Part shown: in pieces, positions 25,374 to 61,355 of the stretch | How positions within the stretch are numbered: the stretch's first letter is position 1 | How the letters are laid out: every line of letters begins with the position of its first letter | Notes under the pieces: generated by a model | What the model was told of the DNA's origin: nothing | The model's input: only the letters and a program-made list of their open reading frames with translations | Databases searched by the model: none | Assembly: GCF_033153115.1 (NCBI RefSeq) | Contig: NW_026889759.1 | Location: 7,130,001 to 7,194,000 of the forward strand | Direction: 5' to 3' | DNA from: Saccostrea echinata | Taxonomy: Eukaryota | Length of the DNA: 64,000 bases | Position numbers and translations under genes: made by a program

Positions 25374-26437
25374 AAATATGGAGTTAAGGACCCTCTCTAC
25401 ACCAGTGCAGAATGTGTTTTGGACATTGAGAAAATTACATTGAATAAAGGTGTAAATATTGAGCTTATCTATTTAATTTTCAATATATGGTGCGTGGCAT
25501 TTACCCCCAGGAAAAATGTTCAAACACAACACAGTATCAGTGAACAGAAATCACTGTTGTTTATTTCCATGGAGAACATACATGTAAATAATGTGTTCAA
25601 TTATTTATCTTGGCCTTTTAAAATGTTAAGAATACTTGAATTGATTAAAAATTGAGTAAGTGCCAATCCGGTTATGTAAGTTATCTCACTTTCCGTGCAT
25701 TTTAAGGAAAAAAAAAGATTTTCCTAGAAGCAACAAAGGATTTTTTATTCAACACTAGAAAGATATGAGTAATCTAAAACAGCACTGGATCATTGATTTA
25801 CTAAATTTCTGAATACAGAACTGTTATGTAAATACATATAAATGATAAGATTTGTAATAAAAAAAAATCATTTTAAATTGTCTAAATAAATTACTCAAAA
25901 TGTTTTCTCCTTTATACAGCGGATATAGCTCATAGGATATCGTTTTCATATCCAAGGTTGTGACGTCATAATGGTTTTTGCCTGAATTTGATCAAGTCAA
26001 ATATTGTCTATTTACATAAATAAGACAGTGTTAAACATGAAATAGGTATGTGTAAGACGTGTGATAAAAAGAATCTCCCATGGCTTGTGGTTGGATAAGA
26101 TTTTTATATCCAGCGTGTTTGTTTATAAATCCCATCGCCAAAGCTCTGGGATAAAAACACACAACTCGTTGCCCAACTACAAACCATGGGAGATCCAATA
26201 TATATTTAGTGTGAATTGTATATATTAATGATCTTTACACGGAATGTTTCGTAGCCCTATAGTCTAGGTATGGACATTTCCTACCTTCCCATGCACGAAA
26301 ACCGTACCATACAAATAAAACTAATCGTATCAAACAAATTCAGAATCGTGGTCCCCCGCCTTTGGGAACCTTTTGGTTGGGGTATAATGAACTATGGCTT
26401 ATTGTAACTGTCTTGTCTGTCCATCATGCTTAAAAAA

Positions 26438-26438
<1 letters not shown>

Positions 26439-26517
<79 letters not shown>
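26439..26517. repeat. (TA)n microsatellite
   Basis: About 39 TA units. Confidence 0.95.
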
Positions 26518-26520
<3 letters not shown>

Positions 26521-27312
26521 GGATGGCAATCGAATACAGAATTGCTAATCGATTAACCACAAGACGTTCCGACCGCTTAACCAGTTAACCGTATCAAAAT
26601 ACGCATTTTCTTGATGTACATACTTTTTTCCTAGGTAGCTCTATTCATATATATAAAAAGAAGACTGATAGAGTCTAGATGTTAAATCATTTTATTTGTC
26701 TTGATTCTTGATTTTTTTAAAAACCCACATGCTTCTATATTTTATTTTAGTTTCAATGTAGACTGGAAAAAAATAAGAAAACCACGAATCATGACTGAGA
26801 AATCATTGATATTTTTCCAAAGCAGATTTCACATACGTTCATTCAGCATTGTCACCATAATTAAAAGTCTGAAATACATCACTTATAATTTACAAAGTTT
26901 GTGTAGTAATTTATTCGATAGATAACTGCAAAAAAAAAAAAAACAAACATAGTAATTCGCAGTTTTTAACGGTGATTTAATTATCATTAAAGAAATACAA
27001 GGACAGTCAGGGTAACGACATGGTGTTTTAACAGTAATTAACACTTCAAACACAAAATGACCAATTACCCTATCTATCCGGAAAACCATAATTACATCCA
27101 AGTCACCTTGGATATGTGAAAACGCTGAATTATCAGCGTTTATGCAAAGATCTCTTTTTCAAAAAATAAATAAATAAATAAATTAACAAACAAAATTAGT
27201 TTCAAATTTATGTATATTTTTTTTATTTTTCCGACTAACCGATTACAGATTTTCTAACCGATTGTCATCGTTCCGACCGAGTAATCGGTTAACCTGTTAC
27301 AAATTGTCATCC

Positions 27313-27315
<3 letters not shown>
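26518..27315. mobile_element. hAT-like MITE embedded in a (TA)n array
   Basis: TIR TAGGGATGGCAAT / ATTGTCATCCCTA; subterminal AACCGA/CGATTA repeats; TA arrays on both sides. Confidence 0.75.

Positions 27316-27383
<68 letters not shown>
27316..27383. repeat. (TA)n microsatellite
   Basis: About 34 TA units. Confidence 0.95.
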
Positions 27384-27385
<2 letters not shown>

Positions 27386-27933
27386 CTCTAGACCCTCGGC
27401 TATCATCTAGGCAAGTCAAAAAACTTGCTTTCGATGCCGATGCAATGGAATTCTCGCGGCGCTGGTCTACACTACACGGTCATTGAGAATGGAAGTGAGA
27501 TACAGTTATTTGGACATTAGTTTTATTAGAGGATCGTTACCAATACACGTTGTAATGAAATTATTTTTTCTTTATAAAGCACATTTTACAACAACTCTTA
27601 AACTAACATAACTGCCCTAAGTGAATACCCTAGAAGGCGAGGTGCCATAACGCCCGTTACCAATTTAGGTGTGTAGCACCCAATGATTGTTAAATGCTTG
27701 TCTGACATTTGTCATTGAAACAATTATTAAAGCTGCGGCCTTTTATCATCCAAAAACATCGTTTATCATAAGTGAATAATAAAATGGGATAAATACTATC
27801 ATCATAGAACAAGGGCCATGAATTTCACAATTTTGGAAAAAGTGTTCTTTCTCATCTTGACCTTGCACTTAGTTTCTCTGCTAAATTTTAAAGAGAAGTG
27901 GAAAGGATGTTCAAAGAACTGATACATTTTTAC

Positions 27934-31123: not shown

Positions 31124-32833
31124 CTATTTGAGGTACTCAAAAACTCTTATTTTACTGCTGACTTGATCAGCCACCCATAATCTGTCTTTGTTATCTATAC
31201 AAACTCCATGTGGCCAAACCAGTTCATCTCTCTTTGTAAGTAGATATCGAAGAAAATATCCATCCTTGTCAATGATGTGAATAGTGGCGTTTTCTCGATC
31301 TGCTATTAAAATATTTCCAAGACTATCTGTTGCAAGATCACATGGAAAGAATTTCCAGAATGTGCTCAGCCAAGAGTAACCACCTTCGTAGACGAATCTC
31401 TCCTTATTATATCTGTCTACGACAATCACTTTCTGAGAGATGGCGTCAGAAATGCATATATCATTGTTAATATTCAGGCAGACACAAAATGGTTCAATTA
31501 AATATTTGTGAGTGATTTCGAGTTTAAGATGCCCTCTTTCGTCATATTTCACAACCTTCCCCCCAGGGCAATCTTGCAGACAAACAATGACGTCACCGGA
31601 ACGCGTGGTACATATGCCAAGAGGTCGACCATTTGTGCGGAAAGCGACATTATCGATATTATCAGGACTGACTTTTCGGATACATTTGTTCTTGTTATCC
31701 GAATAAAATATGCCCCCTTCTCTTGTAGGTGCCAATCCAGATGGATATCCAATCCCAGTAGACGTGGGAATTGCACAAATACGCTTGCCTCCTTCATTTA
31801 CAACAAATATGTCCTTTTGTTTGCCACTAAGTAGGAATTTTTGAGAATGAACATACTTTACGAAATACATATCGGATACACTGAATTCAAATTCAAACAA
31901 GCACTTTGGAAAAGGCAGAACTTTTCTTTCCTCCTGCTGCTCCTCTTCTTGGCTTGGAACGTATTCTTCCGGTTCTGCAGATTGGTTTTCCTGTTTTTCT
32001 GTTGACTCTTCCACTGACTGTGTTATCACGGACGGCAAAAAGGACCCAAATTGCCATGTTATATGATCTTTGTTAAGAAACCCTTTTTGGAAAACTGGTG
32101 GGGTGAAACCCAAGATCTCAGACAAATCTGAAAAGGTAGCATCCTCAGGGTGATCTTTTATGTAGAAAATGAGCTCTGTTGGATGAGCAATCATCTTACT
32201 TCTGTAGAATCCCAAAATTTCATCCAAAATTGAACTCTGTTCATTCATTTCCTTTTCGTATTTTTCTATGTCTTCAATGTCTCTCTTCTTATTAGCATCG
32301 ACCAACTCTATTGTTTCCTCAAAAACTTTGTCCACTAGTTTTTTGAAAGCTTCTTTTTGCTCAATAGCCTGGTCCCTTAATTGACAATATCCCTTTTTGA
32401 TATCATTTTTAATGGATTTCAGTTTTGACAGACGTTCTTCAATCTCAGGTTTGAGAGACGCCTTTATTTTCATGTCATCCACAGCAATCTTTTTCATACA
32501 TTCTTCGAACATGCTTTCCATGCTACAAAGAGTGTGCTTTGCATGTTTTTCGCCAATACACTCATGACATACTGGGATCCTACACAATTTACAGCACATG
32601 GTGTATTCCTTGCACGGATGATCCAGACACATTTGAGGACCATTCATCTTATATATCATCGAAGAATATTTAATGATTTGGTGATGAGAGTAGGAACTGT
32701 TTTCAACGTGTTCCTCTGCGCATTTTGAACAAAATTTGTTTTTGCAATGTGTGCAATAGCGTTCCACAGGTTTCTCCTCACAGTGGATGCACCGCAAGAT
32801 GTCCTGGGCTTCAGGTGGCACGCGTTGATCCAT
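31124..32833 (-). CDS. RING-less TRIM-like protein: two B-boxes, coiled coil, NHL/beta-propeller repeats (569 aa, single coding exon)
   Basis: CIHCEE..YCTHCKNKFCSKCAEEH..H and CLDHP..CCKLCRIPVCHECI..H..H B-boxes; heptad region; NHL-like PxGI/ICISD/NILIAD/LWVAD repeats. Acceptor TTACAG lies just upstream of the ATG. Confidence 0.9.
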   Translation of the reverse strand: MDQRVPPEAQDILRCIHCEEKPVERYCTHCKNKFCSKCAEEHVENSSYSHHQIIKYSSMIYKMNGPQMCLDHPCKEYTMCCKLCRIPVCHECIGEKHAKHTLCSMESMFEECMKKIAVDDMKIKASLKPEIEERLSKLKSIKNDIKKGYCQLRDQAIEQKEAFKKLVDKVFEETIELVDANKKRDIEDIEKYEKEMNEQSSILDEILGFYRSKMIAHPTELIFYIKDHPEDATFSDLSEILGFTPPVFQKGFLNKDHITWQFGSFLPSVITQSVEESTEKQENQSAEPEEYVPSQEEEQQEERKVLPFPKCLFEFEFSVSDMYFVKYVHSQKFLLSGKQKDIFVVNEGGKRICAIPTSTGIGYPSGLAPTREGGIFYSDNKNKCIRKVSPDNIDNVAFRTNGRPLGICTTRSGDVIVCLQDCPGGKVVKYDERGHLKLEITHKYLIEPFCVCLNINNDICISDAISQKVIVVDRYNKERFVYEGGYSWLSTFWKFFPCDLATDSLGNILIADRENATIHIIDKDGYFLRYLLTKRDELVWPHGVCIDNKDRLWVADQVSSKIRVFEYLK

Positions 32834-34786
32834 TTCCTGTAATTAAAAATCAATATGTACACGTAGTTTATAAGACTTACAAAAGATTTTTTGTAAACTC
32901 GTCTGAGCTAAAAGGTTGCTATCGAAATCTGTACGTTCCATCCGTCATTAATATGTGTACTACATGTTTTTGACTTCTTCCGAAATATACGTATTCTTTA
33001 GATTCAAATTTGCTTAAATCTTGGTCCTATCAAGTAGAAAATTTGAATTTAATGCAATATTTATAACATAATAACCTGCTAGGATTGAAAATAAAAATTT
33101 ACAACATAACCTACTAGGATTGAAAATCAAAATTTACTACATGATTGTCCTTAAAAGTGTATTTTAAACAACAAGACATAGTTAGTTGACATAAGAATAA
33201 CAAAAAACACAGAAAAAATGACATGAGAGCACTCAGTCGTAGTTTGTTCAAATAATGTGAGAAAAAGGTAAATCATAACAATGCTATGACTTTCAATAAC
33301 GAAGCTACGACTTGTTGAACTAATGAAACAGGTTCCTCAAACTTGGGACAGCAATAATATAATGTTAGGGATAAGGGATTTACTTGTGTGCTAGAGAGAA
33401 AAAAAACTTTTTGTTGCTCTGTTAAGATCCGCCACTTTTTTAGGTGGATCTGTCACTAGTTAGCGATGTACATATATACTGCATGATGCTTCGTGTTTAA
33501 TGGTTAATCGTGTTAAGGTCCAGACACCTCTGTCTATGTAGATATGCCAATGTATTATGCTTATATGGGGGATTACGGATTGCATCATTAACTGTCGGGA
33601 AATATCAAGAACATATAGCTATTTACTAACATGGCAGCACGGATTAATAATGTTCAAGAGAGCATAACGATTCAATCAATAAATTTGACATTTTAAACAG
33701 TCATTTTAAATTGGTTTTGAATTATTTACGAAATACTTATATAGCCAGATTGACAGAAATATGAATATAATTTCCCCCAAATTAAAATATTTAAATTATT
33801 GTATGATTAATAAAGTTACCTAAGTGTTCGTCAATGAATACAGATGTGGAAATGTACCCTGTTTTCTTATACGTTCTGCAAGATTGCACAGGAACTGGGC
33901 AAGGAAAAATAACTCTTGATAATTACATGTGGTAGCATGCTACATTAAATTTTTAATTTCATTTCATATACATGTAGTTAATAATGGGTCTTGAATAATT
34001 TTATCCAGGTACGTACGTAGTATTGGGGGGGGGGGGGTCTCTTGTTGATACTGAAAAAAAGAAGAAGATGCCTTTAATTTTTTACTGTTAATTTATGAAT
34101 ATATTTTTGAATCCTCCAAATGTTTATATATCCTATAGAAAAAAATATCTGTTATACAAAAAAGTTGAGACCTATCCCACAACACATCCACAAAATATTT
34201 ATTGTAATATTTTTATTTTCCTGTCTTGAGATAATAATAATCAAACTTAGCATGAACTCTATTGTAAGACTGGTATAGCTAGGATATTCCAAATAAAACC
34301 GTCTTGAAGCGAAAAGAAATGTTTGATTTTTTTTTCTTGTTATACAATTTCATTGCATACTATCATATTTAATTATTTATTTATTTTATGTATTTATTTC
34401 AATATTTTCAGTTTTGTTTTAAAACTATATATATATTTTTTAAATCAAACTAGATGCTTCTGTTTGTTCTTGTTGTTTTAGAGAACAGCTGTACATATGC
34501 AATCTTATTTTTTTATTTGTATAAAGGCGTTGCATATTTCCATTCAGTACTATGTCGGCTCCCCCCCCCCCCTTTCCAGTCTCTCTCTTCCGGTAAAATA
34601 TATCAAAATATAGTCCCTGAGAACAACATAGAGTTATTATCAAAATCAGATTTAAAGAGTATTTGTGTTTTATCTCCCTTTTTACTGCAGAAAATATTCA
34701 TGTAGTAAAAAAAGAAGTTAGATTATGATCAATGCCTTCAAGAAATGGATTGCGCGCATGAATATATTACTGTCAAGTATTACATA

Positions 34787-42800: not shown

Positions 42801-45800
42801 ATCGTTGACCTATACAAAATGAATACAAGAATTTATGAATTTGATTATCATTTTGCATTAACAGAGTTTCATTTGAAAGAAATGATACTTATAGAGGAAT
42901 ATTAGTCATTTATCTCAGGGACAGTTAGCTCTCTTATCAGAGGGTCAATGAACCTTAATGATATATCTGGGATTTAAAATTTTAGTATTTCTGATCATTT
43001 TATATGTATGTTTAAATGTTCTTTAACTACTGGTATATACTTTTGAGAGTCAATAAACTAACTTTTTCAAACTCTTCAATGTCCACTTCACCATCTCCAT
43101 TGAAGTCAAACATTTTAAATGCAATTTGAAAATTCCTTGGTGGTGCTGAAATATAAAAGAAAAAGTTGGTTTAATCCATGTACATTTATAAAAGATATTC
43201 TTTGATGATACTGGCAGTACATTTGATAAATAGTGACTAAGATTTTTTTTAAAATGCATGTCCATATATTTGTACATGTAGTTCTCTCTTTTTTTAACCT
43301 CCAATGTGCCCCTTTTCATAACAACTTCCCAAAGAGAACAGTAGGGGAGAAATATTTAACCTACTAGATAACAGTCAGGAGAAATATGTGATCCACTTAC
43401 TAGAGAGAACAGTCAGGAGAAACATGTAATCTACTTACTAGAGAGAACAGTCAGGAGAAATATGTAATCAGAGAAGGAAATGAGACCACTCTCTCCCATC
43501 TGATAGAAAATGCTGTCCTCCCCTAGGTTCCATTCCACTTTGCTGTGCTGAAATAGTGTAGAAACACAATGACGTGAAACTGAAAATGGACCCATGGATG
43601 TGATCAAAATTAAGATTTATCTCTTATCTATGGACATATTTATATGAAAAGTATTTCATAAGTAAAATTTGACAATCATTTTAACTTATCATTACATAAT
43701 CTATTCATAGCATGTAGTCTAACTAAGATGATCTAATGTATATTATTTAATTTATTAATGTGAAAGCAAGCAGTGCTGTACTTTTTAATTGTTTTATATA
43801 ATAACTGTTTTTTAGATTATAAATATTATAAAATAACTGAATACATTAGGTACAACAGAGTTACACTACATGTATTAATTGAGAATAATGTAAAAAAAAA
43901 ATATAAATAAATAAAAGATATGTAGGTATATTTATATCAAAATTTATGTACATTAAAAAAATCATGTCATGCATTAACACACACATATTTTTTGCGGATT
44001 TATTATGCAGTCTATCAAAGGTGAACTTCATTGTGGAAATGAAACACATGCCTGCTGTCAAATGTGATTTTCAATTGTGTTGAGGTCATTCCACAATACC
44101 GTAATTGGTCTTTTAAGAACCAACCTTTCGAAAGTGAGCACAGAAAGGTAGGAATGAAAACAAACTGGTGCACATGATGGCAATGCAATAGGTTTTATCA
44201 GTCTCATAAAAAGTTGTAGGTAAATTTAATTTTTTTCTTGTTGCATGTTTCATGCAGGTAACTTAAGTTGAAGTGGTCAGGCAAAGCATTTTGCATGGCA
44301 GCAATCAATGTTTACCTTTGATTGTAAGCACTAAAAAATTCTTCATTTCTAAAGTCAATTATTTTAATATATCAGACATGTACTAGTGTGAAGAGTATTA
44401 AGACCTCAAATTCTAGTACCAAAGTAAATACGTACATGTAAGGAATTTTTCGTCACACAAGTCAGATAATTAGCTTAATATAACACAATCATGTATACAT
44501 TTTGTCATTTAACACACATCACTTTGAAACACAGTGGTATTAGCAAGACCACCACAATGAAGGCAATATGGTTAGGGCCTCATACACTCTAATGATAGTA
44601 TCTAAAGTTGAATTCAATACACCATTTTTACTTATATTATGCATATCAACTAAACTAGATTCCTAGTAACATCTCAATCTGATTATGACTTTTATTAGGG
44701 CCAGTGGCCCACAGACAGAATTACAGCATTTCCACTTGTTTCTCCTTTCAGATTTCTTTACAAAGCAAAAACAGACTAAACATGATGGGTGGAGGGCAAA
44801 ATGAAAAGATGGAGATTTTGGATCTCTTATGAAGTACATTAAATTGTGTGGAGGAGGTCAAATGTCATGTTATTTTTCTGTGACTGGAGGGTGCAGTGTG
44901 ATAGAAAGACAAATTTCAAATTCTAAATAAATATACTTCATGATTATTGTTTTCCTGAAAGAAAATTGAACACCCTATAAGCTTGGTCAATGATACTTAT
45001 AATCAAAATCTGACAAAGTTGGATTTTATTAAATGTTTGTATTGATATACTGTATACTCAAAGACAAGAATATATACAATTTCAGATACACACAAAAATA
45101 TGAACAGCTACACTCTGTATGGGCATTCCGAGCTATGACAGGCTTGCTTAACTGATTACATGATGTCATTCTACAGCAAGCCTTGCAAAACTCACCACTT
45201 TAAGCGGACACAGCCTCGGCACACTTAAGATTGTTTTCTTCTGTTGAATACGATCGGATAAGGGTGAGAATATGACAGGTGACATGGCATGACATGAAAG
45301 ATGCTTAACAGTGTGACAAAATGGCATTCAAATACAAATGCATGTTATGGGATTCTAACTGTTAAATGATCTTAAGGCATTAAACAACATAAGTGTATGA
45401 AGGAGATCCCAACTGTTCTGTCCCTTTGTAGCTTCAAAATATTTTAAGATAAGAAATAACTGTAAACACTATGCACCCAGAAAATTAAGAAGGAAAAAAA
45501 AAAATACATAAATAAATAAATAAAACCTACCTTTACCTCTCTGACAATTTTTCTCTATATAGAGAGTATATGTAGTTTCAAGAGCTATCAAAAGATTTCA
45601 AGAGTTCCTGACTCAACGCAAGCTCAGTTACAATATTTTTTGTCATTGGTTAATGAAACAAAGACATGAAAATGATGAAAAAAATCAAGCACTCAAGTGA
45701 TACTTAAGACATGTGATGTCTTATCTATGAGAATTACTTTGACCTTGAACTCTATCGACTCTGACCTTGAACTTACATGGTAGAAGTTAAATCTGCACAT

Positions 45801-48800
45801 CTATGTTTTAAACAGTAGAAATTTCAATTATGAAGTTTTCAAAAGGTTAAAGCTTTGGTCAAAGCTGTGAACACAGATACTCAGAAAGTAAACCATATTA
45901 TAAATGTTCCCAATGATGAATGCATTTAGTTCTGTTGATTACATAAGCATTCTGAATTACTTCAGGGCTTCTAAATACCATCTACGTGTACAGTGGCTCC
46001 CTAATCTATACACATACCGGTACATTTGACTTTTTTTGCCCATTCTCAAAAATAATAAACATTATAAATGTCCAAATAGTGTGCATAAAATCAAAGCTTA
46101 ACTATATGCAAGAATTACAAGAAATTCCTTTGTTCAACAGTTACATATGTATCATCTTCAAATAAAAATTCCTTTCAGTAATAAAGCAAAAATATACAGC
46201 AGCACATTTAAAGTTTAGTAAAACAGCACCGTGATTGAAATTTGAACTGCAAAGCATCAAATATTTATTAGTAGAGATAACAGTTAGTATAAAACACAGG
46301 GCAGATGTTTCCACTGTAGATATTATGTTACTTCTATAGGTAAAGGTTACGATTACATCGAGGACGTAATTCAAGAATTTCTCAGATTCATGGTCATATG
46401 TTTTTTTTTTTTTTTTGCGGGATATGCCAACAAAATGTGTAAGTATTTAAAAGTTAATGATTATTTTTATATCAAAGCTTAGTCATCAAACTGATTTTGT
46501 CTAAACAGGGGGCATGGAATTAATATACTGTACTGTAATATCCCAATGAAATAGAACAGGATAAAAAAAGAGCCAGCACCAGAAAAAAGTTTCCTTACAA
46601 GAAGTACAATACAGCAAAGTTTATTCATCACTAAATAAAGTATATTGCATTGTGTACAAAAAGATAGATGATGGTGTGCAAATAAAATTTAATGTATATT
46701 TACTGCTATTCTCTATATATTATCTAAAGTTAGCTACAAACATCTGCCCTCTTCTTTATTATAATTGTCAATATGCAAAAAAAAAAAAAAAAAAAAAAAG
46801 AACAGAGAAATATTTGAAGCAACTCACCAAGATTTGCTTAAAATCTTCTGACTTAGCCAAGACAGATAGAACAAATACTTAGTACTGTACATTACTTAGC
46901 TAATTTCAAAAGAAAATTTATTATTCACAAAATCCCCATGCAAATAAAAAGGAATATTTTTAAAGTCATCTTTTTAACTAATTAACCAAATGATTTAATT
47001 TCAACAATACAGCGTTCACTTAGCAGCTTTAAATCGTAAATTTGGATTTTCAACAAAAATAATCTTAGTTTTATACATTAATTATAAAGCAACATAGCAA
47101 CAAGACAAGAAACAATCTATCTGTGCATGTATATTTTAAACTAACAAAGGCAAAACCATACTTGCTGTGGCTAATATAAACTGCATTAACATTATATAAA
47201 TAGTGCACGTTTTTGAGGGTAACAGTTGAAATTGACACCCCAAGGAAAACCATTGTCAACCGACGCGTCCGCGGAGGTTGACAATGGTTTTCCGAGGGGT
47301 GTCAATTTCAACTGTTACCCTCAAAAACGTGCACTATTTATTTTATTATACTGAATGTCTTATTGATTTCGGATGTCATAAAAAAAAATCGGAGATCGTC
47401 GTTAACTTCACGCTTAGAAAGCTTTCAAACTCCCGCTTCTATTTTTCTCAATAGGAAAGCTTCGTAAAAGATTTACCAACCTCTTTATTATTTGTTTGCT
47501 ACTCAAAAAGTCCTTTATCACCTAAAGTTTGCACTCGCAAGGATGTTTCGTCTGTCGTTTGTATTTTTCAAGTAAGCTACATCGGACGCAAGCTTTTACT
47601 GACGTCGTTTATTCGGCTTCTTTCAAACGCACAACCGACGTTTTGAGAATTCTACGGTGAACCGTACGCGCATGATTTAAACGCATGTGATATTTTCGTA
47701 ATGTTACCCGTTGTCAAGTGTGTTGCTAACGCTGAGGGTAATATTACGGATTGTTAAATGTGTCTAAACCAATCAGATTTTAGTATTTAACATGAAAGTA
47801 TAATAATGAGCAATATCTGCTAGTAACAGCTGGTGTCTGCCATAAATTCAAACTCTAACCTATTCAAAGTATTCTTTCAGTGTGTACTTAGCTACATATG
47901 ATGGAAGGATTTTTTTAAATTACTTCTTCCTACACCACTGAGACTCAGTGAAATGGTAATATATCTTCTCACGGCCGTTGTATCTCAACTTAATGTAATG
48001 ATAATCATTGAAACTTACAAAATTAAATGTCAGTAATTTTCAAAGAGGGTATGATAACTTTGTTATGGTCAATAACATCAATATACATTGCATAAACATG
48101 TACATAACATTCAATTTTTTTTTATCTTGATGGTTCATAAGTTGGTCTATTACATCAAGCTTTTGCAAAGCTAGCAACAACAGAGCCTATTTTATTCACT
48201 TGAAGATACCCTACTGGCAAATAGGACTGAAACATAATCATGCCCATGTCACAATTACAGAACTACAGAACCACTCAAAATATAACACCTTATATGCTTA
48301 GCACATCATTTATTGTATTGTAACAGGAAAAATATTTTTCAGAATGAAATTCTAAACATATTTGTTTGATTTTTATTGGTTTTTGGAACAAACTACATAC
48401 ACATTATTTTTTTGTTGATTGTTTTGGGTTCAAAATTTTTACCTGCTAAATACTGTCAGAGTTGAGATTCAGAGATTTTTTTCCTGTGTAGAATTAGTTG
48501 ATTGAAATTTTTTTTTAGTTTTTGAGAGCACATTGAAAGAGGCTTTTCTTCTTTTAATTTATGAAGGGGATATTTCTAACATTGTTATGGATATGCATAG
48601 ATAAATGTACACATATGCACAGTGTTTGTTTGTTAGAGGGCTCTTAATAAGGAATAAGAAGCTAACAATAAATTTACTGCCATAAGAAAAAAAAACAGTG
48701 TTAACATGGTTAAATTCCTAGTGTTTTCTATAATAAAAAATATTGTGACTAGAATTTTGCTGATTTTAATAAACTGGTGACAATGTGAAAATTAGAGTAG

Positions 48801-51023
48801 ATTACAATATAATTCTGTCTTTAACAATCCAACAATAAAGTATATCCTACCTGAGGATCAAACTTGATAAATCTGTCCAAGTCCAGTCCTACAAAATACA
48901 AGGAAATCAGATTTAACTGTGACCTCAGTTATCTCTTTACATTTATATTTACATGTAGTATTACTTTTTATGCTGTATCTCCTTCAATTCTTGATGACAA
49001 TCAAAACATTTCTTAAAAACAAGCTAAATAAATTAATACGTAAATCTTTTTAAGGTTGGAACACATGGTAAGGCTCGACTTACAAATCGTAAGATTTACA
49101 TGATTATAAACAACATTTCCATAATTTTTTGTATTTTTTCTTTAGGGAGAGAATATGTAACCTTCCTAATTGCATAAGTGCAATTAACAAAAAAAAAAAA
49201 CCCAAAACAAAACACATTACCATAAGAAATTGTTGGGGGAGCTGATACTGTTTTTAAAATGAATTTACTTTCTGAAAAAAATACATGTATCCCCATAACC
49301 TTCTTACAAATTCTTTGTAAACCTTACCCTCAGGCTGTTTCATCCCTGGGGTAATGGAGCGAACAAAGTCCTCGGGAGTCATGTATATTTCCCAGCCTTT
49401 GTCTTCCCCATGGTGTACTTTCAGAGTAGCAAAATAGCGGAAAATCTTATCAGGGGTTGAATAGGCTCGGATTCTATTCTCGTATTCTATAATCTGTAAA
49501 TAAATGGTTGTGAACATTACAATTTTACATGGTTGAAGCAGTTAAATTGTAAAATTGCCTTAACAGTAACATGAATTTAAATATATCTCCTGCATTCACT
49601 ATTTTTTTTCTTACATTAAATCCTACTATTTTTTTTTAAAGGCAAGTGTTATATTGTGCATCTGATCCCTAACTCATATTCCCCCAACCAGATTCTGCAA
49701 ATTCAGCAACATATATGTACCAGGGAAGATTCATTATTGTCGTAAAAAAATGTAAGTATTTATATTTGAAATTTAACTCATCCAAAAACTTTTGAACCCC
49801 AAGGTTACTTTTGTATTTAATACATCCTTAAATACATTACTTAGGTATTCATACTTGCAGAAAAAAAACTATATCCCAAATTTGTTATATATACTAGTAT
49901 TTTAACAAATTTGTTCTATGGATCAAATTACAAATACAGTGTATAGCAAAGAAAATTTGCAGGTCCCCTGGAGTTCACTATAAACAGGTTTTACTGTAAT
50001 CCTGTATGCAGACAAGGAATATTGCTCACTCTCTTCTCCCTGAAGCCAATCTTCTTTTTCTTGACCTCTTCTTCCCCCTCCCCATCTTCCTGGTGTCCCA
50101 CGGCCTCAGGTTCTGCTGCATTCACACTAAAAAAAAATATTCATTCTACTGAAAATTCTTATCTACCTCAAGACTTTTTAGAGTATTTTCGTTTCCAGGT
50201 GTCTCAGGAAAAAATATAACATTATAATCATCTGAAGGTGTTATAAGTGCTAAAATCTTAATTTATCAGCATTACCTATCAATATCTGTTACACAAGAGA
50301 CCTATACTGCTTATCTGAGTTGAAAACCTAAAATCATTTTCTTCACCTAAAAGCTCAAATAGTGTGGTGAAAACATTAAAATTCCCATTAATTTATACAT
50401 ACCTTTTATTTTTTGATTTAAAAAAGGAAAAGTCACCATAAAATCTATGAAAAAAAAAGTTTTAAAAATTCATGATATCACAAAATTAAAATGTGTAATC
50501 TACATACATGTATATGAATTACCCATCAGATGGAGATGTAATTTAATAAAAAATTTTGCTTTATATTTGCATATTGATATCTTTTTAAATCATTTTTCTT
50601 TTTATATATTAAAAAAAAAATTCTTATTTAAAAATTATCTAATAATCTGTATAGTAAGGACATCTCAAACTAGCAACACAGATGTTTATTTTAAGCTAAT
50701 AGTTAAAGTTAAGAGACATACCCTACAAAAGAACCAAGAATGATTAACCCCATTGTGAGAACGTAAATTGTGGTCCTTTTGGAAAAGCGTGGTCTGGGTG
50801 ATAAACCACTGTAAGATGCCCCTCTCCTTATCAGCAGCAAGGATGTGGTTCTGTAAAACCTGACAGGTTGTAAGCTCACAATGGACAATGGTGGACAACT
50901 ACTGCTCACCAACCAATGTGACACATTGTCTCTGCAAAGGCCTTTTTGCAGCTCTTTGGAAGGCAGTCCAACAAATAGTCTGCTTTTTCCACAAGCAACT
51001 GGAAGCCTAGCAGCTCTCCACAT
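39826..51023 (-). CDS. MICU1: Calcium uptake protein 1, mitochondrial (MICU1/CBARA1), 496-aa constitutive isoform
   Basis: Exons (minus): 51023-50722, 50126-50030, 49493-49328, 48888-48851, 43547-43439, 43145-43063, 42809-42615, 42107-41958, 40917-40809, 40653-40564, 39977-39826. Motifs: polybasic [44 protein letters not shown]-hands [12 protein letters not shown] and [23 protein letters not shown]. Confidence 0.95.
40274..40427. mobile_element. Tc1/mariner-pogo-type MITE
   Basis: TA-CAGTCAAACCTCG...AAGTTCAACTG-TA. Confidence 0.6.
41145..41664. mobile_element. Tc1/mariner-pogo-type MITE
   Basis: TA-CAGTGAAACCTGTCT...GATTAGTTTTCACTG-TA. Confidence 0.55.
43325..43470 (-). repeat. ~38-bp tandem repeat (4 copies) of a MICU1 exon end plus its 5' splice site
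   Basis: Minus-strand unit GATTACATATTTCTCCTGACTGTTCTCTCTA-GTAAGTA. Donors at 43438, 43400 and 43364; the fourth copy is degenerate. Confidence 0.85.
47196..47806. mobile_element. Non-autonomous element with a ~145-bp terminal palindrome (Crypton-like, tentative)
   Basis: ~47196-47264 pairs with ~47275-47341 almost perfectly; TTATTATAC...GTATAATAA inverted motifs bound the rest. Confidence 0.6.
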
Positions 51024-59333: not shown

Positions 59334-61073
59334 CTACTGGAGATACTTAAACACTTTCACAGTGTTAGTGAGCTGCCCTACGTAAACATTATTGTCATCA
59401 TCTGCACATACACTACGGGGAGATTCTACTCTTTGTTGTTTTGAGAGAAGATAAGACAAAAACTGACCATCCTGGTCAAGGAGGTGAACTCTATTACTGA
59501 ATCCATCACACACAAGGATATGACCCAGGATATCAGTACAGATTCCGTAGGGCCAGATACTTGACTCTTGACCTGTGTATGAGAATCTATGTTGTCCTGA
59601 TTTATTCACCACTACGACTGCCTCTTTAGGATAATCTGATATACAAATGTCTCCATTGATGTTTTCTGTGATGCACCGTGGTTCACTGAACAGTTTCTGA
59701 CCTTTGTCATCCCTCTGTATGTTTTGTGTTTCTGTTCCTGCTTTATTGTACCTGGCTACTTTAGCCTCTTCTTTGCCATAGTTTATCATCCCCACCAGTA
59801 TGTCCCCATTGATGTGTGAGAAGTATATGCTAACTGGTTTCCAATCTCCTGTTGTAAAAAATGTTGATATTTTGTTATTCATTTCTATTCTTTTAATAAG
59901 CTTGTTGGTTTGGTCTGTAAAGATTAGATCCCCCTCCTCTGTGACAGTGTGGTAACCATGTCCACCACTAGTTCTTACCCTCTGTAACTGATTACCCTCT
60001 CGGTCTGTTTGGACAAGATTGCCACTATAGTCACTGACCCAGAGTCTGCCTGATTGATCTAATGATATATGGCAGGCACTACATACGCCTAGTAAATTGA
60101 ATTCCCTGACTTTAGTGACACAGGAAGAAAGGGAAATTGTTTTTGTCACATCAGACTTCATATATCTGTCTTGTTCTGACTGTTTTCTTGTAGATTTCGC
60201 AGACGCTGAGGATGGAAAACCTTCCATCGGCTTTATTTTTCTCATCTCTTCCCTTGCCTCTTTAACACTTATTTTACCAAACAATTTAGAAACATCATCT
60301 TTGCTGTATTGACCAGCAGTAAATACTGGAATTGCTGGTTTTGATGTCTCTGGTATATTTCTGATTTTCAGATTCTCTTCTGAAATTTCTGGAATTAAAA
60401 TTGTGAGCTCTGTTGAGGAAAGGAATCCTTGAAATTTTTTGACAAGGTCATTGAGATAGTTCATGTAATCTGTAAACATCTGGCCCTGGTTCTTTAATTT
60501 TTCATTCATTGTATACTCTATTTTGTTTAGTATTTCTGTATTTTCAGCCAATACTTTATCGACCGTGTTTTTGAGAGACTCAGCTTCAACCTTCATTGAT
60601 GTCCGTATGCTCTCCATGATCTTCTTTATTTCTGTTTCATCCCGTTTAATTTCTCTTTGTAGATCTTGTGACGTAGGTAGAAAATATTCATGGATTTTAT
60701 AGATTCTCTCTTGGCATAGTGTAAACTTTTCTGCATAAATTGTCTCTAAACCAACGAATTTATGGCCTCTGTGATCTTGCACTGTCGTACACTTAGAACA
60801 TAAAGGAATATTGCATTCAACACAGAGAATATTTATTTTCTTTGTCTGATGAATCTTGCATTTCTCCACCGGAAGTCGTCGTTTGCGTTGTTGGTATAGA
60901 ACAACGTGATGGTTCTTGTTTTCTGCACCTTTCAGATGTTGGTTTCTGCATTGATTACACATCCGTTGATGGCAAGAATTGCAATAAAATTCACAGTTTG
61001 TCTCACAGTCTTCAGTGTCGCACTCCAGAAAGTGTTGGGCAGTTCCTGGTATACTGGGTTTGAATATCGCCAT
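59334..61073 (-). CDS. RING-less TRIM-like protein: two B-boxes, coiled coil, NHL/beta-propeller (579 aa, single coding exon)
   Basis: ATG at 61073 directly follows acceptor TTTCAG. AQHFLECDTEDC..CEFYCNSCHQRMC..C..H and CKIH..CVECNIPLCSKC..H.GH B-boxes; C-terminal PRCITENINGDICISD, PYGICTDILGHILVCD, VHLLDQDGQFL. Confidence 0.9.
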   Translation of the reverse strand: MAIFKPSIPGTAQHFLECDTEDCETNCEFYCNSCHQRMCNQCRNQHLKGAENKNHHVVLYQQRKRRLPVEKCKIHQTKKINILCVECNIPLCSKCTTVQDHRGHKFVGLETIYAEKFTLCQERIYKIHEYFLPTSQDLQREIKRDETEIKKIMESIRTSMKVEAESLKNTVDKVLAENTEILNKIEYTMNEKLKNQGQMFTDYMNYLNDLVKKFQGFLSSTELTILIPEISEENLKIRNIPETSKPAIPVFTAGQYSKDDVSKLFGKISVKEAREEMRKIKPMEGFPSSASAKSTRKQSEQDRYMKSDVTKTISLSSCVTKVREFNLLGVCSACHISLDQSGRLWVSDYSGNLVQTDREGNQLQRVRTSGGHGYHTVTEEGDLIFTDQTNKLIKRIEMNNKISTFFTTGDWKPVSIYFSHINGDILVGMINYGKEEAKVARYNKAGTETQNIQRDDKGQKLFSEPRCITENINGDICISDYPKEAVVVVNKSGQHRFSYTGQESSIWPYGICTDILGHILVCDGFSNRVHLLDQDGQFLSYLLSKQQRVESPRSVCADDDNNVYVGQLTNTVKVFKYLQ

Positions 61074-61355
61074 CTGAAAGCAGCACAGTATGAATATACC
61101 TTCCATACATATTTGAAAAACTACACGTGTATTTATTTTGAATTTTAAAAAATGAGTTTACTAAGCTAAACAATGTCGTAAAACTTTGAATCACAGTCAA
61201 AACGTGACCAACTTAGCACACGAATAACATGAATAAATTCTTGAGACTATTTATAATCATTTTGTTAAAAAGGCACCGAGTACACATATAAGGTATATGC
61301 TATCCCGAAAGCCTGCAATCATTCATTAAATTGGCTTTAATTTAAATGACACAAG

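Follow-up and report, generated by a model that had tools for sequence, protein, structure and literature searches.

The intron between exons 5 and 6 of MICU1 (the Ca2+ sensor controlling the mitochondrial calcium uniporter) in the oyster Saccostrea echinata contains an array of alternative microexons, located in a 64,000-nucleotide (nt) stretch of contig NW_026889759.1 (positions 7,130,001 to 7,194,000) that we refer to as the window. A first-pass annotation of the window had proposed five in-frame microexons in this intron, at the site that receives the vertebrate microexon MICU1.1. The array at that site is real, has three members and not five, and belongs to a type of arrangement that is widespread among animals. 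Our favoured explanation, to which we assign a probability of about 0.85, is that the intron carries three independently usable, frame-preserving optional cassettes in the order A, B, C, which would fall in a flexible loop of the protein and, by analogy with MICU1.1, shift gating of the mitochondrial calcium uniporter, whilst the two remaining candidates arose by chance.

Two optional cassettes and a probable third in oyster MICU1

The minus strand of the window between 39.8 and 51.0 kb holds a 12-exon gene with MICU1-like stop-free segments. When database proteins were aligned to the window (tblastn), each exon matched three RefSeq isoforms of S. echinata (X1–X3), named 'calcium uptake protein 1, mitochondrial-like', at 99–100 % identity, which indicates that the window holds the MICU1 gene of this species. 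Identity to the MICU1 of S. cucullata was 85–98 %. The 36-residue exon 6 matched human MICU1 chains with E values of 4e-9 to 3e-7, compared with 6e-5 or weaker for MICU2 and 0.04 for MICU3, and its residues 9–36 aligned to residues 190–217 of the full-length chain 6k7y_I. Two canonical EF-hand loops, one reading FDENxDGQLS, and a poly-K region were read in the exons, and Pfam EF-hand families are precomputed on orthologues. On these sequence matches the gene is MICU1 and not MICU2 or MICU3, in agreement with the first-pass assignment. The exon 5–6 intron also has the properties attributed to it there, lying in phase 0 between ..FDPQ and HSKV.. and being the largest of the gene; the runner-up is about 1.04 kb long. 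Coordinates are collected in Table 1, and those of all five candidate segments, together with their borders and translations, had been given exactly.

Table 1. Features of the MICU1 intron and of the remainder of the window (positions are those of the window)
Feature	Position	Strand	Description	Support
Constitutive exon 5	48851–48888	−	Ends ..FDPQ at 48851	Joints 48887/8–49327/8 in 4/4 runs; 100 % match to RefSeq
Host intron	43548–48850	−	5,303 nt, phase 0, GT..AG	Skip joint 43547–48851 (runs X1, X5)
Constitutive exon 6	43439–43547	−	Starts HSKVEWNL.., leads into first EF-hand	Human MICU1 match; joints in contigs
Candidate 1	48226–48200	−	SYLPVGYLQ, 27 nt, acceptor tttcag, donor gtgaat	Unsupported
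Candidate 2, cassette A	46851–46828	−	SEDFKQIL, 24 nt, acceptor ctaag, donor gtgagt	RNA joints and RefSeq
Candidate 3	45800–45777	−	MCRFNFYH, 24 nt, acceptor catag, donor gtaagt	Unsupported
Candidate 4, cassette B	45240–45196	−	45 nt, 15 residues including Cys, acceptor caacag, donor gtgagt	RNA joints and RefSeq
Candidate 5, cassette C	44330–44316	−	CLQSK, 15 nt, acceptor ttttag, donor gtaaac	Homologous annotated isoforms
Candidate splicing enhancer	44116–44315	−	UGCAUG and YGCY cluster	Motif count, inferred only
UGCAUG below C	44256–44251	−	+60 from C donor	
Poly-T tract	within 46771–46813		About 33 nt, just downstream of A donor	
Poly-A tract	46391–46416		About 400 nt beyond the poly-T tract	
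Dispersed repeat	47190–47808		About 617 bp, between candidate 1 and cassette A	
Hairpin of repeat	47173–47267 / 47270–47364		Arms of a 95-nt inverted repeat	
Long open frames	31127–32842; 59337–61157	−	Single exon, 572 and 607 residues	
Microsatellites	about 26400–26590; 27260–27480		Long, (TA)n type; translate as YIYIYI..	

Splicing of the intron was followed in public sequencing runs. Five runs matched the window, each with 24–35 % of sampled words, and four of them (runs X1, X2, X3 and X5, labels distinct from those of the RefSeq isoforms) were examined over 43450–49440 as assembled Logan contigs; their records neither identify the material as RNA nor name a tissue. Read on the gene strand, the gaps bridged by contigs measure 439 to 5,303 nt and coincide exactly with GT..AG borders; the neighbouring intron, 48887–49327, is spliced out in each of the four runs. 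The runs thus contain spliced transcripts. Apart from a poly-T tract, the stretch 44250–46900 is single-copy in the 923-Mb genome, so the contigs can be assigned to the MICU1 locus.

The exon 5 border at 48851 is joined to 43547, 45240 and 46851 in these contigs. Direct joining to 43547 was found in run X1 (contig depth 7.6) and run X5 (10.5). Inclusion of B is recorded by the paired joints 45240–48851 and 43547–45196 in run X1 (depth 15) and run X2 (34–43), and that of A by joints 46851–48851 and 43547–46828 in run X3 (depths 124 and 216). Run X3 also holds a contig that joins A to B (45240–46828, depth 8) and retains the intron below B. In run X1 the branch depths of 15 and 7.6 sum to approximately the 22.9 of the shared upstream junction, as for one alternative event. 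Both inclusion and skipping of A and B are therefore present in RNA contigs, and the choice of cassette varies by run, with A in run X3, B in run X2, B and skipping in run X1, and skipping in run X5, depth being a rough guide to abundance only and rare forms being lost from contigs. Exact joints demonstrate the A form, the B form and the cassette-free form, and for the A+B form the A-to-B joint only. The first-pass annotation had named the exon 5 to exon 6 junction as the place to look; inclusion of A and B and the direct skip were all seen there, and no joint was seen for the other three candidates.

Conservation across species was judged on annotated protein isoforms, that is, automatic RefSeq/Gnomon models, which were gathered by comparing exon 42809–42615 with a representative protein library, followed by a word search and cluster listings. 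In S. echinata (XP_061175247–49), isoform X1 carries B, X2 carries A (SEDFKQIL) and X3 carries no cassette; A and B are thus prior annotation and not new. The three isoforms of S. cucullata follow the same pattern (X1 with B, X2 with A, the third without a cassette). Crassostrea virginica has isoforms X1 to X5 with, respectively, A (TGDFKQIL) and B together, B, A, CLQTK and none, and the six isoforms of C. gigas (X1–X6) comprise A+B, B (X2), A with CLQTK (X3), A (TGDFKQIL), CLQTK (X5) and none. Ostrea edulis (X1–X4) displays B in X1, A (SEDFKQIL) in X2, C (CRQNK) in X3 and one form without a cassette. The peptides of A, B and C are hence conserved across three oyster genera (Saccostrea, Crassostrea/Magallana and Ostrea), and the Cys of B and the Cys of C are kept in every oyster sequence compared. 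At 24, 45 and 15 nt, respectively, all three are multiples of three, bounded by AG..GT in a phase-0 intron, and within the 51-nt limit for in-frame microexons with canonical splice sites. The A+B form is missing from the Saccostrea RefSeq models, and its A-to-B joint is the one seen in run X3.

Cassette C is a probable 15-nt alternative microexon in S. echinata, as judged by homology. Its counterpart, CLQTK or CRQNK, is an annotated cassette in C. virginica, C. gigas and O. edulis (three species from two other genera), and Saccostrea CLQSK is identical to CLQTK at four of five residues. Alternatively, with A and B real, C could be disused in Saccostrea, a relic of an exon still active in Crassostrea and Ostrea. 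We consider this unlikely, though it deserves weight: the four runs yielded no joint to C, unspliced contigs from run X3 pass through it, and RefSeq lists only three isoforms for each of S. echinata and S. cucullata. Against decay, the frame, the AG and GT borders, the Cys and the terminal Lys of C are all intact, and the densest YGCY cluster of the intron, together with a UGCAUG at +60, lies just downstream. Contigs moreover drop rare forms, and 15-nt exons frequently escape both assemblers and annotators.

Splice-site strength is in keeping with optional use. A crude position matrix, trained on the gene's own ten constitutive acceptors and eight donors, scored the cassette acceptors at −3.7 to 1.4 compared with 8.5–17.3 for constitutive acceptors, and the cassette donors at 5.9–9.3 compared with 7.6–12.1; cassette A, for instance, pairs a weak AAG acceptor with a strong GTGAGT donor. 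A weak acceptor with a near-normal donor is the usual make-up of regulated exons, and we attribute the optional inclusion of the cassettes to this combination. TGCATG and YGCY are binding sites of Rbfox and MBNL, respectively, and the copies reported to follow C were both located, with six YGCY in the 200 nt downstream of C, the maximum for the intron (mean 1.7); another UGCAUG lies at −90 from A. In motif content, the cluster below C fits Rbfox/MBNL-type enhancement of that exon. The array thus resembles regulated microexon programmes (RBFOX, MBNL, PTBP1, SRRM/eMIC) in its short exons, weak acceptors and motif cluster below C, but differs from them in that no eMIC/SRRM-type UGC occurs within 30 nt upstream of any cassette and that UGCAUG shows no overall enrichment across the intron (three sense copies vs four antisense). 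As a separate observation, the poly-T and poly-A tracts near A form weak inverted repeats and cause read cuts.

The cassette site in other animals

The vertebrate MICU1 proteins compared read ..RFDGK-DFWQ-KISQERE.. or ..RYDGK-DFWQ-TE-KIAQERE.. with cassettes, and ..RYDGK-KLSQERE.. without. In an alignment of 39 sequences the FD[PG][QK] column was common, and every oyster, other invertebrate and vertebrate cassette followed directly after it. This protein alignment places the oyster intron at the vertebrate insertion site, to within a two-residue difference in loop length, with the vertebrate intron phase and position inferred from whole-residue protein insertions; the proposal that the intron occupies the MICU1.1 site is borne out to that extent. 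Vertebrates use their MICU1 microexons in muscle and brain. In human MICU1, exons 5 and 6 are separated by two such exons, exon 5' of 12 nt (EFWQ) and exon 5'' of 6 nt (TE), and four isoforms result; exon 5' raises MCU activation, and its inclusion is promoted by RBFOX2 (Vecellio Reane and colleagues, PMC8909990). The oyster array is like the vertebrate forms MICU1.1 (EFWQ), MICU1.2 (TE) and MICU1.3 (both) in belonging to the same family, in its alignment site, within a loop that is predicted to be flexible or lacks a resolved structure, and in packing several very short in-frame cassettes into one intron, where they are used singly and together. It is unlike them in having three cassettes of 24, 45 and 15 nt, two of them with a Cys, where vertebrates have two, of 12 and 6 nt, and in cassette sequences that are unrelated to the vertebrate ones save for a weak DF.Q likeness of A to [D/E]FWQ.

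Cassettes at this site recur widely among invertebrates. In the scallop Pecten maximus, KDDVHSL, TKQFNKNMEKLGYP and GSK (21, 42 and 9 nt) occur in all eight combinations across isoforms X1–X8, the cleanest combinatorial case among the isoforms compared. Other molluscan cassettes were KDDFR[TK]L, MSKMKK and [DE]P[RK]V in Mytilus, KDNLKAL and KQRL in Mya, KESVAEL and KRQM in Mercenaria, KDSLDDL and DETK in Biomphalaria, KESLKDL and RKGKKERS in Littorina, and KDSIPIW and DKASDVQLLEVLQ in Patella. Beyond molluscs we found DIMTQ and DELDDW in the nemertean Lineus, GQHA in the amphioxus Branchiostoma, SAEE and longer cassettes in decapods, and NHAE, NHDK, VKITQCE and others in insects, whilst the hemichordate and echinoderm MICU1 entries compared displayed none. 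We found no description of this widespread cassette arrangement in the literature searched, nor any of invertebrate or oyster MICU1 splicing or microexons.

Relative to these arrays, that of oysters shares the site and the combinatorial use, and only the first, acidic-hydrophobic cassette is recognizably common to both. Mussels, scallops, clams and gastropods repeatedly show a first cassette of 21 nt that fits K[DE]x[ILVF]xx[LMW], and oyster A aligns to mussel KDDFRTL with one extra codon, which suggests that A is an old molluscan exon. B and C, as far as sequence comparison reaches, appear to be oyster-specific. Oyster A ([ST][EG]DFKQ[IM]L) and mussel KDDFRTL also share D-F-x-[QT] with vertebrate DFWQ, although four residues are too few for significance. 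A broader history may be entertained tentatively, and we would not bet on it: splice tuning through the exon 5/6 intron may go back to the bilaterian ancestor, with two or three independent microexons, and the first cassettes, acidic and aromatic in character (xxDFKQxL, KDDFRTL, K[DE]x[ILV]xx[LW] of clams and snails, DELDDW and [D/E]FWQ), may descend from one ancestor that set the uniporter Ca2+ threshold in excitable tissues. MICU1.1 would then not be a vertebrate invention, and additional lineage cassettes such as oyster B and C would add states.

Predicted effect on the loop and alternative explanations

On the transcript evidence, the oyster appears to produce a cassette-free MICU1 as well as A, B and A+B forms, and by homology with other oysters the C and A+C forms are probably made too. 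AlphaFold modelling of RefSeq isoform X1 gave residues 217–235 a predicted local distance difference test score (pLDDT) below 50; cassette B occupies residues 216–230, and the low-scoring stretch lies between a short strand (210–212) and the helices preceding EF-hand 1. Given this position and score, the cassettes are predicted to alter a flexible loop and not a folded element. They would lengthen and recompose the loop that connects the N-domain strand ..FIKFDPQ to the helix leading into EF-hand 1, probably the same loop that receives [D/E]FWQ (MICU1.1) and TE (MICU1.2) in vertebrates. By analogy with these forms, an effect on Ca2+ gating may be proposed, whereby the cassettes would shift the Ca2+ threshold or the cooperativity of uniporter opening by MICU1 and its MICU partner. 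The intermembrane space is oxidizing, and the Cys of B or C located there could confer redox sensitivity or change disulfide pairing.

The cassettes might equally be imagined as splicing noise that a disordered loop tolerates with no consequence for the uniporter. Such neutrality would sit well with the predicted disorder, with the wide variation of cassette sequences between phyla, and with human data, in which no crystal structure resolves the loop and exon 5'' (TE) alone leaves MICU1 activity unchanged (PMC8909990). We nonetheless find it improbable, because the form differs by run (A in run X3, B only in run X2, no cassette in run X5), the peptide and not the frame alone is conserved in Saccostrea, Crassostrea/Magallana and Ostrea, the A-type motif recurs in mussels, scallops, clams and gastropods, and an effect of vertebrate exon 5' has been measured.

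It is very improbable that all the segments are chance AG..GT intervals in an AT-rich intron and that only the direct exon 5 to exon 6 splice is real. The sense strand of the intron carries 151 in-frame, stop-free, AG..GT-bounded segments of 9–60 nt in multiples of three and the antisense strand 135, compared with 126±13 in dinucleotide shuffles. The pattern by itself is therefore not above chance, and sequence alone could not settle the candidates. Nor did the splice-site matrix separate true from false: among 150 segments it ranked cassette B 1st, candidate 1 6th, C 16th, A 26th and candidate 3 33rd, so that only B stands out. For A and B, however, chance is refuted by the paired joints at exact borders in independent runs, by RefSeq isoforms of the same species, and by peptides conserved across genera. 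Chance holds for candidates 1 and 3 only. Neither had an RNA joint in the four runs, neither SYLPVGYLQ nor MCRFNFYH occurred in the proteins retrieved up to and including the oyster isoforms, and unspliced contigs from runs X1 and X2 run straight through candidate 3. Both were rejected as microexons and are most likely chance AG..GT segments. The first-pass proposal accordingly stands for A and B on RNA and for C on the isoforms of other oysters, and falls for these two, as its own caution that some candidates might be chance had allowed; its choice of the 45-nt exon as the strongest candidate was sound, that exon being both top-ranked and joined in RNA. Of the three cassettes it credited with an added Cys, B and C carry one, and the third was the chance segment candidate 3. 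Three real exons among five picks would be unlikely if drawn blind from 151 segments, which indicates that the eye for splice sites behind the selection was informative. A DNA, paralogue or foreign origin of the joined contigs, for which the silence of the run records on RNA and the repeat-derived depth over 47190–47810 could be cited, is ruled out for paralogues and repeats and is close to inconceivable overall, given the exact GT..AG joints, 48887–49327 among them in every run, the uniqueness of the cassette region in the genome and the 99–100 % match of intron pieces.

Several points weigh against the three-cassette explanation and its functional extension. The Logan contigs carry no tissue label, drop rare forms and measure expression poorly, and the sides of the joints are short (24–30 nt) owing to the short exons. 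Cassette C is annotated in neither Saccostrea species and lacks a joint in the four runs. The likeness of oyster cassettes to EFWQ is weak. We know of no functional datum for invertebrate MICU1 isoforms, and vertebrate structures place the loop a long way from the EF-hand Ca2+ sites.

Other features of the window and significance

The host intron also contains the dispersed repeat listed in Table 1, one end of which forms a hairpin from a 95-nt inverted repeat. Among 1,550 first-look candidates, at least 40 further copies, spread over many contigs, were 97–99 % identical to it. The repeat is abundant in RNA contigs, at depths of 60–350 and with numerous loose ends, and has the appearance of a young non-autonomous transposon. 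Elsewhere in the window, the two long open frames each combine a Cys/His-rich, B-box-like N-terminus, a coiled-coil-like middle and an NHL-repeat-like C-terminus, and resemble TRIM-NHL-like genes, which are typically expanded in bivalves. Two long (TA)n-type microsatellites complete the list.

To our knowledge, MICU1.1 is the best-known microexon that retunes an organelle ion channel. In terms of annotation, the Saccostrea gene models lack two items contributed by the present analysis, a probable exon of 15 nt and an A+B form. Taken together, the cassettes of oysters and other invertebrates supply naturally occurring loop variants that vary in length, charge, aromatic residue and added Cys, with which the role of the loop could be tested in one assay. 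They also raise the possibility that tuning of mitochondrial Ca2+ uptake by splicing may be far older than vertebrate muscle.

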